Of a stretch of DNA of 64,000 bases, positions 2,126 through 40,113 are shown piece after piece. Location: positions 124,001 through 188,000 of the IMG/VR virus record IMGVR_UViG_3300047472_000309; one strand, written 5' to 3'. The notes under the pieces are model-generated. The model made no database searches, was not told the origin of the DNA, and was given only the letters and a program-made list of their open reading frames with translations. The translations under genes and the position numbers were made by a program. How positions within the stretch are numbered: position 1 is the first letter of the stretch; the number at the start of each line of letters is the position of its first letter.

Positions 2126-3532
2126 TTAGCTCAGGAAGATCGGTTGCGCGAAGATGACTTCGCCGTAGCCGTTACGCACTTGGAACACCAGTGCTTTGCC
2201 CGGCACGTACTCGGCGACGAAGCTCATCACACCGGCTCCCGTGTTACGGAAGCTGGTGTTCAGTTGCAGCAAGACCTGATCGGCCGAACCGCGTGCCATC
2301 GGCGGCAGCTCGTCTTCCATCAACATCCCGATGTACGCCGAGAAACGCGACAACGAGTTGGTGGTGAAGATGGTCTTTTCCGGATAGCCACCCGGATAGG
2401 ACGGCGACGGACGTTGACCGTAGAGGCCCGGTGCCTTACCGTAGGGCGAGAGACCGCCCTGGTCCGGACGAGCGAACGGTTCCGTCATGTCTGCACCCCA
2501 AGCCGCACGCGGTTCGCCGATACCCACCATCGGCGGCATCGCCCGCAGCGGTTGTTGACGACCGCTGTTATCCCACACCCCCGACGGCGTGCCCCAGCGC
2601 TGCGGGTGACCGCCACCCAAGGGCGCGGACACCGTCAGTTCCGGCATGACTTCCACGATCTCGTCGTAGCCGCCAGCATTGCGCTTGGTCGTCAGATGCA
2701 CCACCCCCACCGGAATCGCACCAGCACGTGCGCCGACGAAGAGCTGCAAATCCACCGAGCCTTGCGCCGAGGAGTCCGTCGTGGCGATGCCGACTTGCGT
2801 TTGCACCACGCAGTCGAGTTGGTTCATGAGGTCGTCTGTCGACTCTGTCCCGCGCCTCCAGACATGGACCGTCATCTGCCGCACGGCTTGCAGCAGCTTG
2901 TCGTTCACCGCCGCAACGGTGATGTGCGCACGCAGTACTTCGTAGGCTTGCGGCCAGGGCTTGTGGAAGATGTTCGGAATCGTCAGATTTTCATTGCTGA
3001 CAGTTTCCGCAGGCGCAGTCGCTTCGATCAGCTTCGCGTCGACCCCCAGCCCGACGTGGATCGCTTGCTTGCGTTCCTTGGCATCAGCTTCGCGCACGCC
3101 CGCGAAGTATTCGATGGTTTTCGGACCCCGACGCACCGTATCGACCTTCAGGACAAAGGCGCTATCGGCACGACCCGGCACGATCTGATAGACCAGTACT
3201 TCGTCGCCACGACGCTGGAAGACGTAAGTGCCTTCGCCGTCCGGATCGGGATGCTTGCCGAAATGCTCGCCCAGCGCGTTCTTGAACATCGTATTCTTGA
3301 TGTCAACGTTCTTGCTGAGCTTGCCAAACGGCGGCATCACATTGCGATGGATGAAGTTCAACGCCTCGTGGTGCGAGCGCGGGATCATCGGCAGATCCAA
3401 CACTTGCGTGCTGAACTGGATGGTGGCACGCGGCTTCACTTCCTTCATCGCCTTCGTGCGCTTCACCGCAACCGACGTACGCGAGGGCTTCTTGGTAGCC
3501 GGTTTCTTTTGAATGATCTTCTTAGCGTTCAT
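2126..3532 (-). CDS. hypothetical protein, basic N-terminus
   Basis: 468 aa ORF, ACAAGGA RBS. Confidence 0.75.
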   Translation of the reverse strand: MNAKKIIQKKPATKKPSRTSVAVKRTKAMKEVKPRATIQFSTQVLDLPMIPRSHHEALNFIHRNVMPPFGKLSKNVDIKNTMFKNALGEHFGKHPDPDGEGTYVFQRRGDEVLVYQIVPGRADSAFVLKVDTVRRGPKTIEYFAGVREADAKERKQAIHVGLGVDAKLIEATAPAETVSNENLTIPNIFHKPWPQAYEVLRAHITVAAVNDKLLQAVRQMTVHVWRRGTESTDDLMNQLDCVVQTQVGIATTDSSAQGSVDLQLFVGARAGAIPVGVVHLTTKRNAGGYDEIVEVMPELTVSAPLGGGHPQRWGTPSGVWDNSGRQQPLRAMPPMVGIGEPRAAWGADMTEPFARPDQGGLSPYGKAPGLYGQRPSPSYPGGYPEKTIFTTNSLSRFSAYIGMLMEDELPPMARGSADQVLLQLNTSFRNTGAGVMSFVAEYVPGKALVFQVRNGYGEVIFAQPIFLS

Positions 3533-3594
3533 GACCTTGTTTCCTTGTAACGAGTTTATATTTAACTACGCTGTTTAACTGCAGGGGGCGCTGC

Positions 3595-3975
3595 TTACTT
3601 CGAAAAACCTACGTTCATGGCCGATGACGCCGAAGCGCCATCGTGCGTCATGATGTTGACAAACAGACAGGCGTGGGAGACGTTGAGGAATTCCAGCCCC
3701 TGACAGAACATCCGCCACGACAGCGTGGGCTGGAGGAGCGCCCGTTCGAAGTTACTTCGCTCGAGCTTTTCCATGTCAGGGTCCATCAGGTGTTTCATGG
3801 GGTGTCGTGCCATGAAACGATCCATCAGAGCTTCCCACTTTTCCGGAGTCATCTCCACGCCGCGAACCAGGGCGCGGAATTGCACCGCCAGAATCTGGTC
3901 CGTGGCCATCGGTTGCTTTAGGGGCTCTAGCAACTGCTCAATCACGTGCGGTTTAGACACCTGCATCCTCCGCAT
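3595..3975 (-). CDS. hypothetical protein, paralog of 3953..4357
   Basis: shares ILA..FR, KW..LM..F and W.....GL.FL motifs with its neighbour. Confidence 0.7.
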   Translation of the reverse strand: MRRMQVSKPHVIEQLLEPLKQPMATDQILAVQFRALVRGVEMTPEKWEALMDRFMARHPMKHLMDPDMEKLERSNFERALLQPTLSWRMFCQGLEFLNVSHACLFVNIMTHDGASASSAMNVGFSK

Positions 3976-4357
3976 CAGGCTTGCGCGGCCCGGTCCAGTC
4001 GATCCGGCTTGGGATCGGCACCAGCTCCTTGCCGTTGATCACGCCCGTCACGACGATGTTAGCCGCAGTGAGACCGAGAAAACGCAGGCCGATCAGATAC
4101 GTCTTCCAGGTCATCGAGGGTGCCGTGAGCTCCTTCGTCACGTTCGCGGTCAGTGCATCCCGCGTGGTTTCGTCGGGCTTCTCGACCAGCTGCATTTCTT
4201 GCTGCACGAACTTAACCATCAGTTCGTCCCATTTCTGCTCATCGACCTGGAGTGAGAGCAACATCCGGCGGAAATTGTCGGCTAAGATGCCGCCACCCGT
4301 CAGTGCTGCTGCTTCACTGGTACCGGCCAAGAGGGCTTTCACTGTATCGTTGCTCAT
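3953..4357 (-). CDS. hypothetical protein, paralog of 3595..3975
   Basis: 134 aa, AAGGAG RBS, shared motifs. Confidence 0.75.
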   Translation of the reverse strand: MSNDTVKALLAGTSEAAALTGGGILADNFRRMLLSLQVDEQKWDELMVKFVQQEMQLVEKPDETTRDALTANVTKELTAPSMTWKTYLIGLRFLGLTAANIVVTGVINGKELVPIPSRIDWTGPRKPDAEDAGV

Positions 4358-4416
4358 GATACTCTCCTTGTTAAAAAGAGGAGCCCAGTCGGATAGCTGG
4401 ACTCTACCGTTACAAC

Positions 4417-7026
4417 TTACTTCAAGTTCAACACGAGTTCGACCACTGCCTCCACCGAGCCTGCTTCCTTGACACGGATCACCAGTTTGTCGTGCTCGAC
4501 GTAGTGCACGTCGTAGATCTCGTCGTTCACGCCCTTGTGGTGATACATCTGGTCGATGTATTTCACCATGTTGCGAGCGCGCTCCTGCCTCTCCTCGTCA
4601 TCGAGGAGTTCGATGATCACGGCCATGGCGTGATTGAAGAAGACCCACACCGGCGTGGCGAAGCAGGTGCCCGGCAAATACGCGGTCGATGCCGTCACCG
4701 GCGGCGGGGGCGGTGCTTTCTTTGTTTCCGGTGAACCCAATACCCCCACTTGAATCACGTTCTCCTGCCACATGAGTGGATTAGAGGTTTCCATCACCGC
4801 AGTCGTCACTACCAGCATGACTTCCGAATCACTGCGGTCCGGATCGAAAACCCTGACGTGATAGGTGCCCGGAATCACTTGCGAGGCTTTCTTCGTCGTT
4901 GCGTCCATCACTGGACGCTGTTGCTTAACGATTTCGAAAAAGTGATAGGCCGTCACACCGGGATAAACGGAGGTGATCGAAACCGGACCTTCATTGAAGG
5001 CGAGCCAGCTCGTGAACTCCTCATACCCCACCACGTCATCCAACAGCGTCATGAAGCGCAAGGAAACCCCGGACTGCATCATGTTGACTGCAGGGGCTTC
5101 GCCGACTTTCGGACCTTCTTTCCAGTTCTGGCGCACGATCACTGGTTGCCGGATGGTTTCCGATTCGCCCATAGCACGAATACCCTTCATGCTCGTGGGC
5201 GTTTCGTACTTGCTAGTGTCCTTGAAGAGCATCGTCGGATCAGTCTTCGGGGCTCCCGTATCCGGAATCGGGTTCGCTGCCGAGCCCACATCCACGCTCT
5301 TACCGCCCATTGCTTGAGTACGTGCCGAAAGCGGTTCGAAGACCGGCGGCGGTCCCATCTTCGGCATCTCGACTTCGAACGCACCGATGCATTCCGAGAG
5401 TTTGCCTTGGTCAATCGATTCGAGTTCCGTGTACACATCGAAACCAAACAGCAGCTTCGAGTCTGCACCCGGCGAATAGACCTTGCCCTTGATGTGGCCG
5501 CGCTCCAGCGTGTGGTTACTGCGCAAGCTCGGCGAGATGACCCGTTCGAACTTGATCACCACTTGGCTGGCCAGACGACGATCCAGATCCCGGATGAGCG
5601 CGTAGCGCCGCTGGATGTCATTCCACAGCCGCTCGATGTCCTGGACTTCGCGCGCACTGGCCGTGTTCGTGAGCACCATCAGTGCACTAGCGCCGAAGCT
5701 CAGCGAGTCGACACGGTTGACCGCCAGATGTTGATTCTGACGCAGCGTCGGGTCCGTCAGGTACAGGATCTTTTCCACTTGCTGGGGCTTGCTGCCGATC
5801 CGATACTGAGTTTCCCATTCCGCCGTGGTCGTGAACGTGAGCATACTGCCGAGCTGCATCACGCCGAGCGGCTTACCCACAACTGGTACGAGCACAGCCA
5901 TGTCGACCAGACCCAACTCCGACGAGAGTTCATCCGAATGCGGGTTCTTCGTGCCAAGCAAGCTCGCACGCTTAACTGAGACGAAAGCGAACCGGATCAG
6001 GTCCGGCTCCACATCGTGCATTTTGCAGACCTTGTTGAGCAGCGTCTTGAAGTACTCGCAATCGCGCCGCTCCACCGACTGACCTTCCAGCCATTCTAGC
6101 GCGCACTCCAGGGTCGTCGGTCCGCCGCCCTCGAGCGGGACCAACACCGGCGCCGGTTCTTCTTTCTTTTGTTCCGGCCGAGCAGTCGCCTCGGCCGCCT
6201 TGGTGTCGTTTGCTGCTGCGTTGTTTTGTTCGAGTGCCATCTCTGCCTCCTGAGCAGGTTGTTCGGTGTGGGCTGCCGTATCGACAGGCGTGGGTGGCGT
6301 GTTCATCTCGTACAGCAGACGTGTTGCCTCGATGATGAACCCGTCAGCTTCCAGAATCTGACGCTGATCAAAGGTCAGAAAGCTGGTTTCAAAACGCAGG
6401 GTTGCCAGCACCATGTCCCTCGCGCCCTTAGGGCGCATATAGAGCTTGATCAGACCCCCGCGGCCTTCACGCGGATGACGCAGTGCATTACCTCGCACGA
6501 ATTCCACTTGCTGAGGCGTGAGGTTGTGCAACTTCAGGAAGTCCCGCAACTGCCTGAAGAGGACCTCACCCTGACTACCGTCGCCGCGATACACCGACAT
6601 CCACATGCGCAGATCGTCGATCGTCGCTGCGTTCTCTTTCGAGAACTCCGACAGGTCGATCCGCTTGATGTCGTAGTCCGTGCCGAACACGATGTATTCC
6701 TTGCCGTCGACCATCATTGTCCGCAACGCGTTGTGGTGCACGGTTTCAGCCGGGCGTCCAAGAGTGATCCATCTCAGTTCGATCATGAACATCCCGGCGA
6801 GCGCGGCTGCTTCTTGCGGCCGATAGCAATGATAGACTTGCCCCCAAAGTTCACCCGCTGGTGCCTTGCTATTGACGATACATTCCGCGACGTGATCCGC
6901 CACGACGCTCTTACGCAAATAGGTGTTCGACTTGATCCAGTCACCGAGTGTCTGTTCCTCGCCCGGATTCGCGACGATCGGAAAACTGGTTTGCCCTTGT
7001 TCGTGGGCTTGTTCGAGGGTAATCAT
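4417..7026 (-). CDS. large hypothetical protein
   Basis: 869 aa ORF, no recognisable motif. Confidence 0.8.
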   Translation of the reverse strand: MITLEQAHEQGQTSFPIVANPGEEQTLGDWIKSNTYLRKSVVADHVAECIVNSKAPAGELWGQVYHCYRPQEAAALAGMFMIELRWITLGRPAETVHHNALRTMMVDGKEYIVFGTDYDIKRIDLSEFSKENAATIDDLRMWMSVYRGDGSQGEVLFRQLRDFLKLHNLTPQQVEFVRGNALRHPREGRGGLIKLYMRPKGARDMVLATLRFETSFLTFDQRQILEADGFIIEATRLLYEMNTPPTPVDTAAHTEQPAQEAEMALEQNNAAANDTKAAEATARPEQKKEEPAPVLVPLEGGGPTTLECALEWLEGQSVERRDCEYFKTLLNKVCKMHDVEPDLIRFAFVSVKRASLLGTKNPHSDELSSELGLVDMAVLVPVVGKPLGVMQLGSMLTFTTTAEWETQYRIGSKPQQVEKILYLTDPTLRQNQHLAVNRVDSLSFGASALMVLTNTASAREVQDIERLWNDIQRRYALIRDLDRRLASQVVIKFERVISPSLRSNHTLERGHIKGKVYSPGADSKLLFGFDVYTELESIDQGKLSECIGAFEVEMPKMGPPPVFEPLSARTQAMGGKSVDVGSAANPIPDTGAPKTDPTMLFKDTSKYETPTSMKGIRAMGESETIRQPVIVRQNWKEGPKVGEAPAVNMMQSGVSLRFMTLLDDVVGYEEFTSWLAFNEGPVSITSVYPGVTAYHFFEIVKQQRPVMDATTKKASQVIPGTYHVRVFDPDRSDSEVMLVVTTAVMETSNPLMWQENVIQVGVLGSPETKKAPPPPPVTASTAYLPGTCFATPVWVFFNHAMAVIIELLDDEERQERARNMVKYIDQMYHHKGVNDEIYDVHYVEHDKLVIRVKEAGSVEAVVELVLNLK

Positions 7027-13160: not shown

Positions 13161-13222
13161 GCTCGCTCCTTGTTTGATGTCATAAGCGGGAGAGGTTCCG
13201 CGCCTCTCCCGTCAGTCCTCGT

Positions 13223-13648
13223 TTACTGCAGTGTCAGTCCGGCTTGATTGGTCCGGCCCACACGACGCGGCGCCACCACTTCCTCGCCCCGGCGCGGGCG
13301 CAGCTTCACGCCTTCCAGCAGCCACGGCTGGTTATCCCGCAACCACGCCACGTCCTTGGTAATGGTGCCGGTGGAGAGCTTAAAGCACTTGGCGATGATC
13401 GTCTGCTTCATGCCCGCTTTCATCATCTTGGCAACAAACGCTCGGCGCGGCTCCACTGCCATCCAGTAGGCGAATTCCTCCACCCCATTGCGAAAGAGCT
13501 TTGCCTCGTAGCCCTTGTCAACCTGAACGACGACAAGCTTGAGAAACAGGAATTTGTGTATCGTAATCTGCACGTACTTTCGGCTGTTCTCGTACTTATC
13601 GTAGATTTCGTCGATGTACTGCTTCGCCCGGTCCATCTTCTTTGCCAT
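13223..13648 (-). CDS. HTH DNA-binding protein
   Basis: start MAKKMDR after ACAAGGA; C-terminal GMKQTIIAKCFKLSTGTITKDV helix-turn-helix. Confidence 0.65.
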   Translation of the reverse strand: MAKKMDRAKQYIDEIYDKYENSRKYVQITIHKFLFLKLVVVQVDKGYEAKLFRNGVEEFAYWMAVEPRRAFVAKMMKAGMKQTIIAKCFKLSTGTITKDVAWLRDNQPWLLEGVKLRPRRGEEVVAPRRVGRTNQAGLTLQ

Positions 13649-13809
13649 TTCAGTTCCTTGTAACAATTGTAGAGTAACGACTAATGCGGGGCTTTGCGCC
13701 CTCTCATCTACGGGTAGTAGCTTACCCATACGAAGTGCCCAGCGCGTAAAAATCACATTCCTTCGAAATAACGGCATAAGAGGAGAGCCGAAGCTCTCCC
13801 CCAATACCT

Positions 13810-14372
13810 GAAGCGTCGATTGCAAAGTCCTGTGGACAGGGATAAGCAAAAGCTTTGACTCTATGCGACTCGAATGCACTTCCGACTATACTTACCAGAC
13901 AGGGTGGCCATCCCAGCAAGTAAGTACACCCGGCTGCGCATTCCCAGCCCGACGTAGACGCAGCGGCCGCGGTGAAAACCGCAGGCGCCACTAGGCGAAC
14001 AAGTCCCGTAACGGCCGCACAAGGAAGACGGGCGTAACAACTCCGGGCTGGCACGTCGGGTTACCCCGGTTACCAACGAATCGCGAAGAAGCGAGACTAG
14101 ACGCAGTATCGGTACTGGAAACAAACAACTTACTGGTGTTTGCGTCACCAGTCGTACGATTCGTGGCACCCTTCGCGCGCAAACGCGATCTCGTCCACAC
14201 GTAGGTACCTCCGCTAATCGTGAGTCACGGAGTCACAGGCGAAACTCGCCTGAATCTTGCTTGCAGCAAGTCTGGAAGCACTATCGACTCGGTCTGATCC
14301 ACAAGGTCCAGTCAGCGGCAGGTCAGTGCATGCAAAGGAGAGGGCGTAGTTTCACGTCCGACAATGCTTCCA
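13810..14372. ncRNA. candidate large structured ncRNA
   Basis: ~560 nt with no credible ORF and many nested inverted repeats, between the tRNA-like cluster and a terminator. Confidence 0.5.
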
Positions 14373-14394
14373 AATTTGATGGCAGAAGAAAACT

Positions 14395-14520
14395 TGGTTC
14401 CGTCAGGTTGGTATCGAACCAACGACCTCCGTCTGGTTGGTGAGTGGGAGAGTCCACCCTACCTGGTCGGTAGGTGGGCCCACTCTGATGACGGCGCTCT
14501 ACCAACTGAGCTACTGCGGA
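14395..14520 (-). ncRNA. tRNA-like RNA 1 (anticodon loop replaced by a long hairpin)
   Basis: TCCGCAG-TA-GCTCAGTTGGTAGAGC-G-CCGTC-[insert]-GACGG-AGGTC-GTTGGTTCGATACCAAC-CTGACGGA-A-CCA. Confidence 0.8.
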
Positions 14521-14544
14521 CACTGAGGTACAACGGTAAAAGGA

Positions 14545-14677
14545 TGGTTCCAAGCGACACGAATCGAACGTGTGACCTCCCGTCTGTGTATACCAACTCC
14601 ACCACTTCCCAATACTGGGAAGCCCGGATTCGAACCGGGGGAACTACGGGCACTCTTCCAAACTGAGCTACGCTGGA
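14545..14677 (-). ncRNA. tRNA-like RNA 2 (anticodon loop replaced by a circularly permuted tRNA module)
   Basis: TCCAGCG-TA-GCTCAGTTTGGAAGAGT-G-CCCGT-[T arm, closed acceptor hairpin, D arm]-ACGGG-AGGTC-ACACGTTCGATTCGTGT-CGCTTGGA-A-CCA. Confidence 0.8.
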
Positions 14678-14702
14678 CACTGATACAACTACAACGAATT
14701 CT

Positions 14703-14787
14703 TGGTAGAGAGGGTGCGATTTGAACGCACGAAGGCAGAGCCACCGGATTTACAGTCCGGCCCTTTTAACCACTCAGGCACCTCTCT
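14703..14787 (-). tRNA. tRNA-Tyr(GTA)
   Basis: AGAGAGG acceptor, D loop with GG, CCGGA-CTGTAAA-TCCGG anticodon arm, long variable arm, GTTCAAATC T loop, ACCA end. Confidence 0.95.
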
Positions 14788-14799
14788 ATTGCTGCATAT

Positions 14800-15531
14800 C
14801 TATACCACGTTCTGATAAGACTTGCCGTTGATGATGTCAGAGATCAACGAATGATGAGCGCCGTACTGACGACCAATCTCCCGCATTCCCATCGTCCCCT
14901 TCAACTGGCGAATCTCTCGAACCTGTTCTTCTGTGAACCGAGAACTACCCACTTCTGTCCCCTGCAGAATAGGAACCAAGTTATTAGCATAGGCGTGCTG
15001 GGTATTCTCTTTGTACGTCGCCCATTCAAGATTCGTGTCGCGATTGTCGATCTTCACCGCGTTCAGGTGATTAACGATTGGCTTGTTATCTGGGTTAGGG
15101 ACAAAAGCTTTTGCGACTTCACGACTCGTCTTGATTGCGCGATTCACTCCATTGCGACCACCGATCTTGGTGATGTGATGGAGATAGTTGCCATCTACTA
15201 AATTTTGCGACACAACGCGATTTGTCCGCTTCGAATACAAATCTCCGTTTCGAGTGACCAGGAAATAATCTTCCAGGCCCTCAATCGGTTTCGCGTCGTT
15301 ATGAGGACTTGGGTCATCGGCGGTTCGCTTACGAATCTCGCCGTCCTCAATAATTAGGTTGAGAGGGAAAGGCTCCCCATCTTCCATTTCCTGCTCAAAC
15401 TGGTCCAGCGGGCGAAGCTCGTGCGTGTTACCCGATTCTTTCAAATGGGTGATCAACATGAATTCTTTGCCGTTCTTGTCTTTTGTTTGTCGCAGAACCC
15501 ATTCGTCCAAATTAGGCATTACCAAAGGCAT
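14800..15531 (-). CDS. HNH homing endonuclease (NUMOD4-HNH-HTH type)
   Basis: IEGLEDYFLVTRNGDLYS (NUMOD4-like), VAKAFVPNPDNKPIVNHLNAVKIDNRDTNLEWATYKENTQHAY (HNH), C-terminal HTH. Confidence 0.9.
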   Translation of the reverse strand: MPLVMPNLDEWVLRQTKDKNGKEFMLITHLKESGNTHELRPLDQFEQEMEDGEPFPLNLIIEDGEIRKRTADDPSPHNDAKPIEGLEDYFLVTRNGDLYSKRTNRVVSQNLVDGNYLHHITKIGGRNGVNRAIKTSREVAKAFVPNPDNKPIVNHLNAVKIDNRDTNLEWATYKENTQHAYANNLVPILQGTEVGSSRFTEEQVREIRQLKGTMGMREIGRQYGAHHSLISDIINGKSYQNVV

Positions 15532-15662
15532 GCTTTATCCTTCAAAAAGTGGGAACTACTAGAGAGGGCGTTGAGGACACGCACGACGTTCACACAAGCT
15601 TCTGGTTAGGAAGCTCATGCAAGCATCACCCTCTCTAATAGATGCTCAGACGCGGTAAAAAG

Positions 15663-36060: not shown

Positions 36061-36852
36061 ATGAGCAACAGTAAGTACAAGCGTAAACGCAAGACGCATG
36101 ATGCGCGCGACTTCGTTTACCACGGTCACAAGACCTTCGGGGCGGCCCTGATTCCGCCCAAAGCGGACTTGACGCCTTACCTCGGCCCGGTCTTCGATCA
36201 AGATCAGCTCGGTAGCTGCACCGCCAACGCCTGCGCAGGCGCACTTGAATACGAACAGAACATCCAGAACAACAATCACAACGCCGTGCCACTCTCGCGG
36301 CTATTCCTGTACTGGAATGAGCGTAATCTGGAAGGCACGGTCGATCAGGATTCGGGTGGTCAGATTCGTGATGTGGTGAAAGCCGCAGCCCAGTACGGCG
36401 CGCCGCTCGAAACCACCTGGCCGTACAATGAACGGGCGTTTCGTCAGAAGCCTTCGCTCGAAGCATATACTGAAGGGCTGCAACATCGGGCACTGAAGTA
36501 CGAAGCCGTGCCGCAGGACATGACGGCCTTCAAGCACGTGCTGGCGGTGCTCAATCGTCCGATTCTGATCGGCATCATGGTGTTCGATTCGTTCGAGTCG
36601 CAAGAAACGATCGCCTCCGGGGTCGTTCCGATGCCGGGTGCGAATGAAACCTGCCAGGGCGGTCACGCCGTGCTGTGCGTGGGTTACGACGATCAGAAGC
36701 AAGCATTTCTCGTGCGGAACTCCTGGAACGAAATCTATCCTCCGGCTTGGCCGGGTTCGAAGGAGCGAGGCTCGTTCTGGTTGCCCTACGAGTACATGAT
36801 GAATCCGGAACTCGCTGAAGACTTCTGGGTGATCACAAGCGTGAACGGCTAA
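36061..36852 (+). CDS. papain-family (C1A) cysteine protease
   Basis: DQDQLGSCTANA (Gln/Cys), GGHAVLCVGYDD (His), VRNSW (Asn). Confidence 0.92.
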   Translation: MSNSKYKRKRKTHDARDFVYHGHKTFGAALIPPKADLTPYLGPVFDQDQLGSCTANACAGALEYEQNIQNNNHNAVPLSRLFLYWNERNLEGTVDQDSGGQIRDVVKAAAQYGAPLETTWPYNERAFRQKPSLEAYTEGLQHRALKYEAVPQDMTAFKHVLAVLNRPILIGIMVFDSFESQETIASGVVPMPGANETCQGGHAVLCVGYDDQKQAFLVRNSWNEIYPPAWPGSKERGSFWLPYEYMMNPELAEDFWVITSVNG

Positions 36853-36877
36853 GCAAAAAAAGAAGGACAGCATAGAC

Positions 36878-36900
36878 GCCCTCCCCGTCGCGGGGAGGGC
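36878..36900. terminator. bidirectional hairpin terminator
   Basis: GCCCTCCCCG-TCG-CGGGGAGGGC between convergent genes, flanked by CATA and TATG. Confidence 0.75.
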
Positions 36901-36920: not shown

Positions 36921-37286
36921 TTACGCAGCGAAGAGTTCCACCGCTTCGTACCTCGCCGTGGGTGTGTCCTCGATCAGCTTCGACATGATTGCGTCCTTGA
37001 ACTCGACCGGCAGCAGCGTTGCGTTGTGCTGGCTATTGGCCCAGCTAAACGACGTCGGCTTTTCCTCATCCGCGAAGTAAACCTGGCTGAGATACTGATA
37101 CTTCTTCTCACCCCGTTCATCATACGCACGACGAATCACCCAGCCGAAGCTCTTGGAGTCCACTGTCTTTTCAAGGATCTCCGCTGCGTGTCGTACCCCA
37201 TTATCGTACGCGCGCATGGTGTCCAAGTGAGCGGGCTTCTGCGGAACTTCCTTGAGGATAAGAGCCACCAGGGGATGCTTATTCAT
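36921..37286 (-). CDS. hypothetical protein co-transcribed after the Tas gene
   Basis: 121 aa, GAGGAG RBS, starts 22 bp after the Tas stop codon. Confidence 0.7.
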   Translation of the reverse strand: MNKHPLVALILKEVPQKPAHLDTMRAYDNGVRHAAEILEKTVDSKSFGWVIRRAYDERGEKKYQYLSQVYFADEEKPTSFSWANSQHNATLLPVEFKDAIMSKLIEDTPTARYEAVELFAA

Positions 37287-37308: not shown

Positions 37309-38574
37309 TTATGCCGTGTAGCGTGGATGCTGCCAACCGGCTTCTTTCGCTTGACCGTGGACCTTACCCAGCACGCCTTCCGAATACTCCGGTGCGACCA
37401 CCAGACCTTCCAGCGCACGCCACTTGTTGTACAGATCAACCAAGAAGCGCTTGACCATGTAGCGGATGGCCATGTTGTGTTTGTGCAGGTCCGTCTTCTC
37501 GGCGTGGCGCGGATCGTTCTTCAGGCGGTTCTTGTAATTGTTGTAGATGACCGCATACGGGCTCGGCTCAACCACCACCGTGTGACCCTTGGCGCGCAGG
37601 TAGATGATGACGGCCTGATCTTCGTCCATCTCTGCGTAGTCCTTCGGATCAAAGCCTTCTTCCTTAGCGAGCTCCAGCCGACGCAGTGCACCGACTTTCT
37701 TGCCATCCACCGTGGAGATGCCCGCACGCAAGAACGAGGTCCCTGCCACGCCGATCAGCTTGGTCTTCAGGAACGGGTTGAAGGTAATCGAATCACGCAG
37801 GGCGAGTTCACCTTCGCGGTTGGTGTATTCCTTCTGCACCAAACAGAAGTCACGCCGTGAACGACCGACCGCTTCGAAGGTCACCGGATACTTGCCTTCA
37901 GCGAGCATCGGCTGATCGAAGTTCTTGCTGTCGGCGTACCAGGCGTCGATTTCCTGACCCCGCACCGTCTGCTCACGACCCTTATCGTCGATGTACTTGC
38001 CGATGTGCACTACGTCCAGGCCTGCGAGCTTCCAGAGGCTTGACGGATATTCCGCCTTGGTGATGTCGATCTCAGAGACGATGATGCCTGCCAAGGCCGG
38101 ACCAATCCCGCGCACGCTCGACAAGAACTCGGTATAGATCGGGATCTTCTTCAGAATCCGTTCCATGTCCTTGAAGTGGTGCTCTTCGTTCTTGAGCGTG
38201 TTCAGGTAGTTATCCACCAGCAACAGTTCGCTGTAGTGCGTGATGAGCTCATCGCCCTTGAACTTCTTCTCCGTGGGGAGCTTAGCTGTCACGGTTTCAG
38301 CGGCTTCAGCCGTGTCGTCGTGGTGCTCGTCGATGATACCATCGGTGATGCGGCGATAGGACTTGCGCAGCTGCTCGAGCAGGTTCTTTTCCTGCTTCTC
38401 GAGTTCCGCCTCGCTCATGCCGTCCTGACGCAGACCGAGCTTGGCTTTGAAGCTCGCAGTCACGCGGTTACCCATCTGGATTCGCAGCCCTTGCATGTCA
38501 TAGGCCGAGCGCACCATGGTGCGAATCACTGCGAGGTTGGGGTTGTAGGTCGGAGCGATGATCGGGGTATTCAT
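37309..38574 (-). CDS. tasA: TIGR-associated Nop-domain protein (TasA-like; IS110/Nop5-related, no nuclease domain)
   Basis: starts at the IS110-type coiled coil (IRTMVRSAYDMQGLRIQMGNR); VRGIGPALAGIIVSEIDI..EYPSSLWKLAGL, FNPFLKTKL, Y..YK.R, H.HNMAIRYMVKRFLVDLY..WR.LEGL; no N-terminal RuvC/DEDD or HNH; abuts the dual-repeat array. Confidence 0.85.
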   Translation of the reverse strand: MNTPIIAPTYNPNLAVIRTMVRSAYDMQGLRIQMGNRVTASFKAKLGLRQDGMSEAELEKQEKNLLEQLRKSYRRITDGIIDEHHDDTAEAAETVTAKLPTEKKFKGDELITHYSELLLVDNYLNTLKNEEHHFKDMERILKKIPIYTEFLSSVRGIGPALAGIIVSEIDITKAEYPSSLWKLAGLDVVHIGKYIDDKGREQTVRGQEIDAWYADSKNFDQPMLAEGKYPVTFEAVGRSRRDFCLVQKEYTNREGELALRDSITFNPFLKTKLIGVAGTSFLRAGISTVDGKKVGALRRLELAKEEGFDPKDYAEMDEDQAVIIYLRAKGHTVVVEPSPYAVIYNNYKNRLKNDPRHAEKTDLHKHNMAIRYMVKRFLVDLYNKWRALEGLVVAPEYSEGVLGKVHGQAKEAGWQHPRYTA

Positions 38575-38620: not shown

Positions 38621-40071
38621 TGTTACACTAGCTGCTCTTGGGTGAGACTCTACTGGTTTGATACACTAAGACAATCTGGATGAATCGTTGAGGTTGATAC
38701 ACTGTGCGAATATGGATGAATAAAGGTCGCTGATACACTACTCTACGCTGGGTGATTTCTGTATTGTGATACACACAGACCTGATGGATGAATAACCGTC
38801 CTTGATACACTAACCAACATTGGGTGGCTTTTGCGCCATGATCCACTATTTTCAACTGGGTGAATTGAATACGTTGATGCATTTTCCACGTTGGGTGGTT
38901 TAACTTCGCTGATACACAGTCCTTCGTTGGAGGACTCCAGGATAAAGATACACTAACCGGAATTGGGGGACTGTTTGACCGTGATACGTTACTGCACGTT
39001 GGGTGACTGCAAACATGTGACGCACTGCGAATTGATGGGTGGTTCAAGACTTTTGATACGTTGAGGGATACTGGAGGCCTAATGCACGATGACTCAATCA
39101 TCCTACTGGGCGACTTGATCGATGTGCTACACATACCTCGCATGGATGAATCCAATGTCTCGGTACGCTGATATTCATCGAGTGAAGGCGTCTTTCATGG
39201 CACACTTCATGCTTTGGGTGTCTCTTGCCTCTGATCCATTCTATCACAATGGGTGGCTGGAGCAGATTGATACACTCGAGATCGTGGGTGACATTCGTCC
39301 TACCTTGATACATTAACTCATGACGGATGCATAGACGTCTTTGATACACTTACGATGCATGGGTAATTAGCGTGCTTTGATGCACTAACTCTTTTTGAGT
39401 GCGCTTCCCGAAGTGGTACACTAAAAATTTTTGGGTGTCTGCGTATTTTTGATGCGGTTGATTGCGTGGGTAACTTCCATGTTTTGGCCCGTATTACTCA
39501 TTTGGGCGACAACACCTTTTGACGCACTTCTCCTCCATGGGCGAAATTAAACCGGTGGTACGATTTCGACTCTCTGGGGGACTATGTCAGTCTGACACAC
39601 TAGACTACAATGGGGGACTTTTACTCATTGATGCAATTATCCGGTTTGGGCGAATAACAAAAACATGGTACATTCATCTCTCCTGGGTGCTTCAACATGC
39701 CTGATGCGCAAGTGTAGTATGGGTGGCTTCATCTTCTCTGACGCACTGTTCGACAATGGGTCACTTAGTTACTGTGATACACATTTCCCCTATGGGTGCG
39801 ATACCGATGTGATACATTTATTGCAATTGGGTGACTGGTCCGGATTGATACGCTGACTACGCCTGGATGAATTAGCGCTCGTTGGCACACTGGCATAGGG
39901 TGGGTGAATCTTGAGTTTTCTGATGCGCTTGGCGCAACTGGATGCCAATGATACTGTGCCACACTTCGACAACTGGGTGACTTAACTTCCTTGGTCAACT
40001 ATGCGGGACTGGGTGACATCGATACTCTGATACACTAAATCAGTTGGGTGACTGGTGGTTCTTGATGCGTA
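38621..40071 (-). repeat. TIGR array (tandem interspaced guide RNA array), ~40 units of ~36 bp
   Basis: alternating 9-mers TGATACACT and TGG(G/A)TGA(A/C)T separated by unique 8-12 nt (mostly 9 nt) spacers; unit starts at 38659, 38695, 38731, 38767, 38803, 38839, 38875 ... 40028, 40063; strand assigned by inference. Confidence 0.9.
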
Positions 40072-40076
40072 CTACG

Positions 40077-40105
40077 GCCCGAGGTTTGCCTCGGGCTTTA
40101 TGCCG
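40077..40105 (+). terminator. hairpin + TTTATGCCG at the distal end of the array
   Basis: GCCCGAGG-TTTG-CCTCGGGC-TTTATGCCG. Confidence 0.6.
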
Positions 40106-40113
40106 CACAGGTG

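Follow-up and report, generated by a model that had tools for sequence, protein, structure and literature searches.

A predicted nuclease-free, dual-repeat TasA protein with two structured insertions, encoded by a chimallin-carrying jumbo phage

The DNA analysed here is a stretch of 64,000 nucleotides (the window) that runs from position 124001 to position 188000 of IMGVR_UViG_3300047472_000309, a virus record of 310,654 bp with direct terminal repeats. It contains a gene, tasA, and on the same strand an array of the tandem interspaced guide RNA (TIGR) type. Judged by sequence and predicted fold, the product of this gene is a dual-repeat, nuclease-free TIGR-associated (Tas) protein of the TasA type. 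The assignment is made because the protein shares the Nop domain and C-terminal domain (CTD) of Tas proteins and carries a loop with Y397 and H406, the hallmark of dual-repeat systems. In our preferred reading, which we hold at a probability of about 0.65, TasA acts as an RNA-guided DNA binder on non-self DNA and is the effector of an accessory TIGR-Tas module in a chimallin-encoding jumbo phage.

TasA and its guide array

The tasA start codon (ATG at 38574) is preceded by a AAGGAAAC ribosome-binding site, and homologues share this start position. In phmmer searches of the PDB the protein matched TasR (9mty, E 4.6e-9) and SpTasH (E 2.9e-5), with matches beginning at residues 120 and 151, respectively. 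Pfam gave a single weak match to Transposase_20 over residues 149-189 (E 0.013, below the cut-off), and PHROGs assigns the protein to phrog_4285, labelled 'transposase'. An AlphaFold2 (AF2) model was built on 46 homologues, among which 35 positions are invariant and 59 nearly invariant, and reached a predicted local distance difference test (pLDDT) score of 85.9. When this model was used as a Foldseek query, TasH and TasR chains occupied ranks 1-11 at probability 1.0, while the IS621 recombinase and archaeal Nop5 were much weaker, the Nop5 chains having E values of at least 0.4.

The model opens with a coiled coil, in which helices 12-46 and 55-78 lead to a disordered acidic tip (81-96) and a further helix, 114-141, runs back. 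No RuvC or HNH match was found in TasA with Pfam, and neither the open reading frame (ORF) nor the AF2 model has an N-terminal extension. Both begin at the coiled coil and leave no space for a RuvC or HNH domain at the N terminus; none was detected, and TasA has no nuclease domain. A first-pass annotation, made by a model from the sequence alone, had described a protein that starts at the coiled coil without a RuvC/DEDD or HNH region, and the AF2 model, the Pfam search and the short gap between gene and array all bear this out. Its description of a TasA-like binder also holds, given the Nop/CTD core, the coiled coil, the lack of a nuclease and the adjoining TIGR array.

The coiled coil is also the predicted site of dimerisation. 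A TasA homodimer was predicted with an interface score (ipSAE) of 0.67, compared with 0.04 for the best control; a score of 0.67 was attained by 21 of 30 solved homodimers and by 0 of 23 monomers. The homodimer runs shared at least 71% of their contacts, the partner pLDDT was at least 72, and the predicted interface was restricted to residues 7-45 and 112-143, which belong to the coiled-coil helices.

At the other end of the protein, Y397 pairs with SpTasH Y289, and H406 falls two residues past the H296 position in the pairwise alignment. Within the family Y397 is nearly invariant and H406 is invariant. In SpTasH, Y289 and H296 have been shown to process the precursor of the TIGR RNAs, pre-tigRNA (PMC13421893), and a Tyr/His loop is characteristic of dual-repeat systems, being absent from stem-loop systems (10.64898/2026.09.09.750476).

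Two other identities were considered. IS110 transposases and archaeal Nop5 resemble TasA in the CTD/Nop fold, as seen in the Transposase_20 match and the weaker Foldseek matches to IS621 and Nop5. Unlike the former, TasA has no transposon ends and no DEDD RuvC domain in Pfam or in the model, just the sub-threshold Transposase_20 helix-hairpin motif. Unlike Nop5, Nop56 and Nop58, it has no fibrillarin-binding N-terminal domain and no kink-turn (K-turn) RNA; its 9-nt repeats cannot form K-turn stems.

The array spans about 1.45 kb without a long ORF, lies directly upstream of tasA with its last repeat ending 45 nt before the start codon, and is the sole such array in the 310-kb genome. On the minus strand, each unit consists of an edge-type repeat AGTGTATCA, a 9-nt spacer A, an A/C-rich loop-type repeat AGTCACCCA and a 9-nt spacer B. 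The array terminates in the edge type, as TIGR arrays have been described to do (PMC12045711). For box C the loop-type repeat has CCA and the edge-type repeat has UCA. At their 5' ends, in place of the UG of box D, the repeats have a variable AGU, and SpTIGR repeats likewise start with AG. A 36-nt-periodic stretch was present in 64 of the 71 related loci listed (each about 13 kb), with one more at period 35; the scan accepted a stretch anywhere in the locus, and its adjacency to tas was checked by eye for some.

Repeat orientation points to the sense strand of the array. All 19 arrays examined, both those upstream and those downstream of tas, have repeats of the form AG...CCA or AG...TCA when read in the tas sense. 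In the tasH sense, the SpTIGR repeats downstream of that gene are AGACAACCA and AGCGAGCCA; this array has been studied experimentally, with its transcripts sequenced. The repeats downstream of the tas gene of phage phiRSL1 are AGTCACCC and AGTGnnCC. Because SpTIGR, phiRSL1 and the related arrays all read in the tas sense, the minus strand would be the sense strand here. Transcription from the plus strand, suggested by a GC-rich hairpin at the 5' end of the array, was rejected on the same grounds. This hairpin has a short T run on the plus strand only, and the terminator scan called neither strand; it may serve as a terminator, a processing signal or a stabiliser.

The repeat format differs between groups of relatives. 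Compact TasA relatives and SpTIGR have nearly invariant 10-nt repeats and 8-nt spacers (loci L018, L026, L048, L051, L063 and L080), whereas proteins with both of the insertions described below go with 9-nt repeats that have loose 5' positions, and with 9-nt spacers (this array, L011 and L017); the unit is 36 nt in both. A second 36-nt-periodic stretch in this genome, at 306426-306660, lacks TIGR repeat motifs and is probably a coding tandem repeat.

Insertions, lineage and carrier phage

Two structured segments interrupt the Nop core of TasA. Their boundaries were set by alignment with compact relatives (285-303 residues), phiRSL1 ORF034 and SpTasH. Insertion 1 (about 49 residues) lies between the LWKLAGLD motif (GLDVV) and GRSRR, on the wedge side of the helix at the unwinding junction, and insertion 2 (about 52 residues) lies between SFLRAG and SPYAVIY. 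The first-pass annotation had placed two interruptions of 50-70 and about 60 residues among these motifs, which the alignment confirms with the sizes just given. Counted over fixed columns, the first site holds 50 residues here versus about 7 in compact relatives, and the second 58 versus 6-7. The expansion is also seen against the solved structures, in which TasA residues 189-344 (155 residues) match 42 residues of TasR 9mty, and residues 195-362 (167 residues) match 67 residues of SpTasH. Modelled separately, residues 184-342 reached a pLDDT of 90.5, and the insertions are predicted with high confidence in the full model too. Both insertions, with conserved length, are present in all 45 aligned homologues (47-84% identity) but one, which lacks insertion 1. 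The segments, first noted as a trait of this protein, are therefore real but not peculiar to it, as they define a large lineage.

The insertions could not be matched to a known fold. The best E value in a Foldseek search of the PDB was 0.55, and an exhaustive VIA-align comparison with 48,161 chains gave a best Z of 3.4, with weak WWE-like and SAP-like rows. Among AFDB clusters the sole match was a Tas relative, found through the shared core; in the ESM Atlas the template modelling (TM) score was at most 0.32, and with Pfam the insertion segments had no match in any of 45 members. No similarity to nuclease folds appeared in the PDB, AFDB or ESM Atlas. Foldseek, VIA-align, AFDB, ESM Atlas and Pfam thus led us to reject a nuclease or any other known domain; an insertion folding as a nuclease, the outcome that the first-pass annotation had named in advance as fatal to its idea, was not seen in the fold or Pfam searches. 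Embedded tigRNA units were likewise rejected, as the best score within the coding sequence equalled the median of shuffles.

Conservation is lower in the insertions than in the core (mean frequency of the top residue about 0.5, compared with 0.65-0.84), and both insertions are net acidic, with a family mean net charge of -3.3 for insertion 1. Apart from R299, the positions that they conserve are mostly glycine or hydrophobic, and none is nuclease-like; those in insertion 2 are V289, G291, R299, A303, G307, L326 and G330. Nothing suggests a catalytic centre in either insertion.

Between the insertions, residues 263-285 (ITFNPFLKTKLIGV) form the best conserved part of TasA, with I263, N266, P267, L269, K270, T271, K272, G275 and V276 invariant. 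F265 pairs with W203 in the alpha4 helix of SpTasH and is followed by the invariant K270 and K272, although the alignment is gapped here and the basic partner is not certain. In published structures alpha4 separates the DNA strands at the unwinding junction (10.64898/2026.08.11.744272). In PlTasA, hairpins B and A precede alpha4, B adjoining box D and A capping the displaced strand, and hairpin C comes after it and touches the backbone where the strands part (10.64898/2026.08.11.744272). By this comparison, insertion 1 and the hairpin at 237-262 would occupy the side of PlTasA hairpins B and A, and insertion 2 the side of hairpin C.

The TasA family is large, with more than 1,400 proteins at E of 0.001 or less among the candidates and 1,975 representatives in a 50%-identity library. 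In a sample of 138 representatives, 31 had both insertions, 31 had one at the first site only, 10 had one at the second site only and 66 had neither; the first-site-only insertions were heterogeneous, at 35-143 residues. On a family tree built from core columns only with a quick search, 26 of the 31 two-insertion proteins formed one clade (Shimodaira-Hasegawa-like approximate likelihood ratio test, SH-aLRT, 81), and the two-insertion label required 4 changes, compared with 28 in shuffles. Because the first site changed state 22 times and the second 13 times, the two sites are, on this tree, recurrent hot spots, and the present TasA belongs to a lineage that keeps a fixed pair. Six relatives of 672-879 residues (P0121, P0138, P0176, P0181, P0186 and P0198) carry an intein with Hint and LAGLIDADG domains at the position of residue ~183, between LWKLAG and LD and just before the first insertion site. 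Pfam found no Hint or LAGLIDADG match in this TasA or its insertions. Among 50,697 deposited phage genomes, only phiRSL1 has a TasA homologue.

The carrier phage has a chimallin gene at genome positions 3132-5042 on the minus strand (PF25677, 186 bits, compared with a cut-off of 27) and, at about 17.5-18.5 kb on the same strand, a gene for a tubulin-like protein (PF00091, 32.1 bits, just below the Pfam cut-off); it is probably nucleus-forming. Its genome also encodes a divergent family B DNA polymerase and a dihydrofolate reductase. Chimallin was found in 10 of 11 contigs with a two-insertion TasA, the exception being a fragment that is 26% complete. It was found in none of 16 contigs with a compact TasA, including the 231-kb phiRSL1; most of these come from 35-75-kb phages, in which chimallin is not expected, and the contrast largely amounts to the two-insertion lineage being restricted to jumbo phages of the chimallin type. 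Burkholderia phage FLC9, the closest relative in culture, encodes chimallin but no Tas homologue. In its syntenic slot (record positions 152387-154507, flanks about 79% identical), four unrelated hypothetical genes, gp164-gp167, stand in place of the 121-residue gene, tasA and the array. Because FLC9 has chimallin and carries other genes in this slot, the TIGR-Tas system is, by gene content, accessory in this phage type.

Mode of action, targets and alternatives

We infer the following course of array processing, DNA binding and repression, together with the nature of the target and a role for the insertions. The array would be transcribed in the tasA direction. A TasA dimer, joined by its coiled coil, would bind the box C/D-like repeat ends, and the loop with Tyr397 and His406 would cut the precursor within the edge repeat to release 36-nt tigRNAs. 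The two 9-nt spacers of each tigRNA would then pair with opposite strands of an 18-bp DNA site. Because TasA has no nuclease, the bound complex would block rather than cleave its target, acting as a reversible obstacle to transcription or replication on the host genome or on competing mobile elements. A block of this kind had been put forward in the first-pass annotation, and it gains support by analogy from the published activity of other TasA proteins (bioRxiv 10.64898/2026.09.09.750476), which bind 36-nt RNAs and repress transcription (PMC12045711; 10.64898/2026.09.09.750476; 10.64898/2026.08.11.744272). The insertions, which flank the junction helix, would be accessory modules specific to the lineage and not catalytic, and could enlarge the footprint of the complex or offer a surface for protein binding.

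The guides appear to be maintained. In relatives whose flanks are 82-90% identical, the arrays are partly collinear, with units gained, lost or moved. Many units keep 18/18 spacer bases between relatives while the 5' part of the loop repeat changes (L008, L009, L010 and L012), and unit 23 (at about 39240-39276 in the window) is preserved even in a phage whose Tas has diverged to 77% identity. Guides kept between phages include those of units 10, 12, 13, 23, 29 and 31. Retention of 18/18 spacer bases while the repeat 5' parts change argues for selection on the guides.

Several observations weigh against this reading, the first being that no target was found for any guide. In the 310-kb phage genome, the 40 spacer pairs gave the same mismatch distribution as 120 mis-paired controls, with two pairings and both half-site orders tried and the array masked; self-targets were rejected, as none stood out beyond the mis-paired controls. 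Outside it, three conserved guides were searched in one geometry, with spacer B first and then the reverse complement of spacer A, as deduced from published 8-nt 3' overhangs, and matched at chance level. For unit 23, 596 Gb of genomes gave four scattered matches and the viral contigs gave none, unit 31 matched one virus that had been sampled three times, which is the chance level, and unit 29 had no external match. As for the protein, acidic insertions whose conserved positions are glycines and hydrophobic residues fit contact with nucleic acid poorly, their placement relative to DNA follows from the order of secondary-structure elements and not from a modelled complex, and H406 is offset from SpTasH H296. 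As for expression, the hairpin at the 5' end of the array looks more like a plus-strand terminator. No promoter was identified, a sigma-70 scan being uninformative (1 site, compared with 3.1 expected); phages of the chimallin-encoding jumbo type use their own polymerases. The runs that hold the locus are DNA only, from soil and rhizosphere metagenomes.

Among the alternatives, we consider it unlikely, though worth weighing, that the insertions are docking surfaces with which TasA recruits a nuclease, a polymerase factor or the nucleus import machinery, or which fix the side of the shell on which the ribonucleoprotein (RNP) resides. Docking would fit segments that are acidic, structured, orphan in fold and without a nucleic-acid-binding signature, and it would fit the occurrence of the two-insertion lineage, but not of compact TasA, in chimallin contigs. 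The guide also stays at 36 nt, so that the insertions do not track a longer RNA, unlike in the stem-loop clades. However, no neighbouring gene is conserved, the downstream genes differing in all compared loci. The association of the lineage with chimallin may merely mirror shared phage ancestry, and neither segment has been linked to chimallin or to import factors.

It is improbable that TasA regulates its own phage genome (the timing of transcription, replication or packaging) through partly matching guides. Imperfect sites can be bound, as TasR acted on an Escherichia coli site with 6/9 bases matched in one spacer (PMC12045711), and Faure et al. proposed that DNA bending by TasA might aid phage processes (PMC12045711). 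The true spacer pairs, however, were equal to the mis-paired controls in both geometries and both pairings, and FLC9, with chimallin but without the system, implies that the system is dispensable for this phage type. The first-pass annotation had argued that host or competitor DNA would be the likelier target if the phage were nucleus-forming. Judging by its chimallin and tubulin-like genes it probably is, and no self-match exceeded the control.

Still less credible is an RNP that targets RNA in the manner of box C/D small nucleolar RNPs, as the first-pass annotation had also suggested. The RNA might, for instance, be cytoplasmic transcripts of the host or a competitor. In cells infected by Chimalliviridae, which form a phage nucleus, the cytoplasm is where foreign RNA is accessible. 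The Nop domain has an ancestry in common with box C/D RNPs (PMC12045711), but TasR was reported to be inactive on single- and double-stranded RNA (PMC12045711). Nor is there a partner of the fibrillarin or L7Ae type, the repeats lack a K-turn, the helix at the DNA-unwinding junction keeps its residues invariant, and we saw no evidence for RNA targeting at this locus. That the locus is a decaying relic, with an inactive protein and a degenerating array, is the least plausible reading: the repeats are degenerate in the 5' and middle parts of the array, with poor scores for several units and lengths of 8-12 nt for some spacers, but the frame is intact, the protein keeps its invariant positions over 46 homologues of a very large family, and guide units are conserved between phages.

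Neighbouring gene, known systems and significance

Table 1. Positions in the window of tasA, its parts and the adjoining features.
Feature	Position	Strand	Basis
tasA coding sequence, 421 residues	37309..38574	-	ORF; homology to TasR/TasH
Predicted coiled-coil dimerisation hairpin, residues 12-141 (helices 12-78, 114-141; disordered tip 81-96)	38152..38541	-	AF2; homodimer prediction
Insertion 1, residues ~188-236, beta-rich with one helix	37867..38013	-	Absent from compact relatives; pLDDT >90
Conserved beta-hairpin (237-262) and junction helix (263-285, ITFNPFLKTKLIGV)	37720..37866	-	Invariant residues; SpTasH alignment
Insertion 2, residues ~286-337, strand-three helices-strand	37564..37719	-	6-7 residues here in compact relatives; pLDDT >90
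C-terminal loop with Y397 and H406, candidate tigRNA-processing dyad	37345..37404	-	SpTasH alignment; conservation
Dual-repeat TIGR array, 40 units of ~36 nt	38621..40071	-	Repeat families; unit parse
GC-rich hairpin (inverted repeat) between 99-residue gene (stop 40114) and first array unit	40066..40107	.	Inverted-repeat search
121-residue gene, 22 nt downstream of tasA stop	36921..37286	-	No Pfam or PHROG match
Terminator-like hairpin with T run, closing the unit of tasA and the 121-residue gene	36860..36886	-	Terminator scan, minus strand

The gene for a 121-residue protein downstream of tasA (Table 1) is probably co-transcribed with it. By tblastn it had no homologue in L005-L007, and none turned up in the 80 related viral tas loci. 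Three of these 80 come from phages with near-identical Tas, which carry other small ORFs in its place. Among 5.8 billion proteins it has three homologues, one of which lies beside tas in the closest strain, L106. By this distribution the gene is a strain-variable accessory and not a conserved component of the system. The first-pass annotation had offered it as a partner recruited by TasA, a role that we reject, as the gene is not conserved and nothing but adjacency speaks in favour. The slot between tasA and a convergent gene for a papain-like peptidase (36061-36852, PF00112) is hypervariable, holding a different small ORF in each phage: 121 residues here, 136 in L008, 76 in L009 and 67 in L010.

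Several known systems resemble this one in part. FpTasA of Flavonifractor plautii (PMC12045711) is also a solo coiled coil with a Nop/CTD core and no nuclease, and its array has two alternating short repeats, 9-nt spacers and a 36-nt unit (PMC12045711). The present protein, compared with FpTasA by description and not by alignment, is about 120 residues longer than compact dual-repeat relatives, its array has 40 units with loosely conserved repeats where 5-15 units are usual (PMC12045711), and its carrier, unlike that of FpTasA, is a chimallin-encoding jumbo phage. The best structural match is SpTasH of Salicola phage CGphi29 (PDB 9w03, 9w04 and 21kl), which has the C-terminal Tyr/His loop in common with the present protein and likewise goes with AG...CCA repeats in the tas sense. 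It has, however, an HNH nuclease at its N terminus and neither insertion, and its array combines 8-nt spacers with 10-nt repeats. TaTasR (PDB 9mty), the solved structure that matches best in sequence (the match covers the second coiled-coil helix and CTD1), also uses 9-nt spacers, but it has its own N-terminal RuvC domain and only 42 residues, compared with 155 here, between the AGL motif and the YxxYKxRL helix.

PlTasA and MbTasA are likewise nuclease-free, and for them DNA binding and repression have been shown experimentally (10.64898/2026.08.11.744272, 10.64898/2026.09.09.750476). On either side of the junction helix, at the two sites of the insertions, they have accessory hairpins; these elements are about 10-25 residues long, compared with about 50 here, and the two proteins use stem-loop guides and lack the Tyr/His loop. 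Closest in setting is ORF034 of Ralstonia phage phiRSL1, annotated as 'transposase', which is 28% identical over 95% of the query and belongs to a jumbo phage with a dual-repeat array on the same strand. Unlike the present protein, it has 345 residues and neither insertion, its array lies downstream, and the phage has no chimallin. In the phiRSL1 record at 13180-15640, ORF034 is a compact TasA followed by a dual-repeat array of about 1.3 kb in an unannotated gap.

TasA was named in 2025 and its repression of transcription was shown in 2026, so a nuclease-free Tas is not in itself new. What appears to be new is that a dual-repeat TasA, with a guide that is still 36 nt, carries two structured insertions of orphan fold at its unwinding junction, and that the two-insertion lineage is tied to chimallin-encoding jumbo phages; the literature that we searched nowhere mentioned TIGR-Tas in connection with jumbo or nucleus-forming phages. 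The insertions also show tool builders two places in the core where domains of about 50 residues are tolerated. For the phage, the finding raises the question of where a phage-encoded DNA-targeting RNP acts when the phage DNA itself sits behind a protein shell. One tentative answer, which we think rather unlikely, is that the insertions adapt TasA to compartmentalised infection, by setting the side of the chimallin shell on which the RNP resides or by coupling it to a phage partner. If so, host or rival-phage DNA in the cytoplasm could be silenced by the phage, whose own genome would stay shielded.

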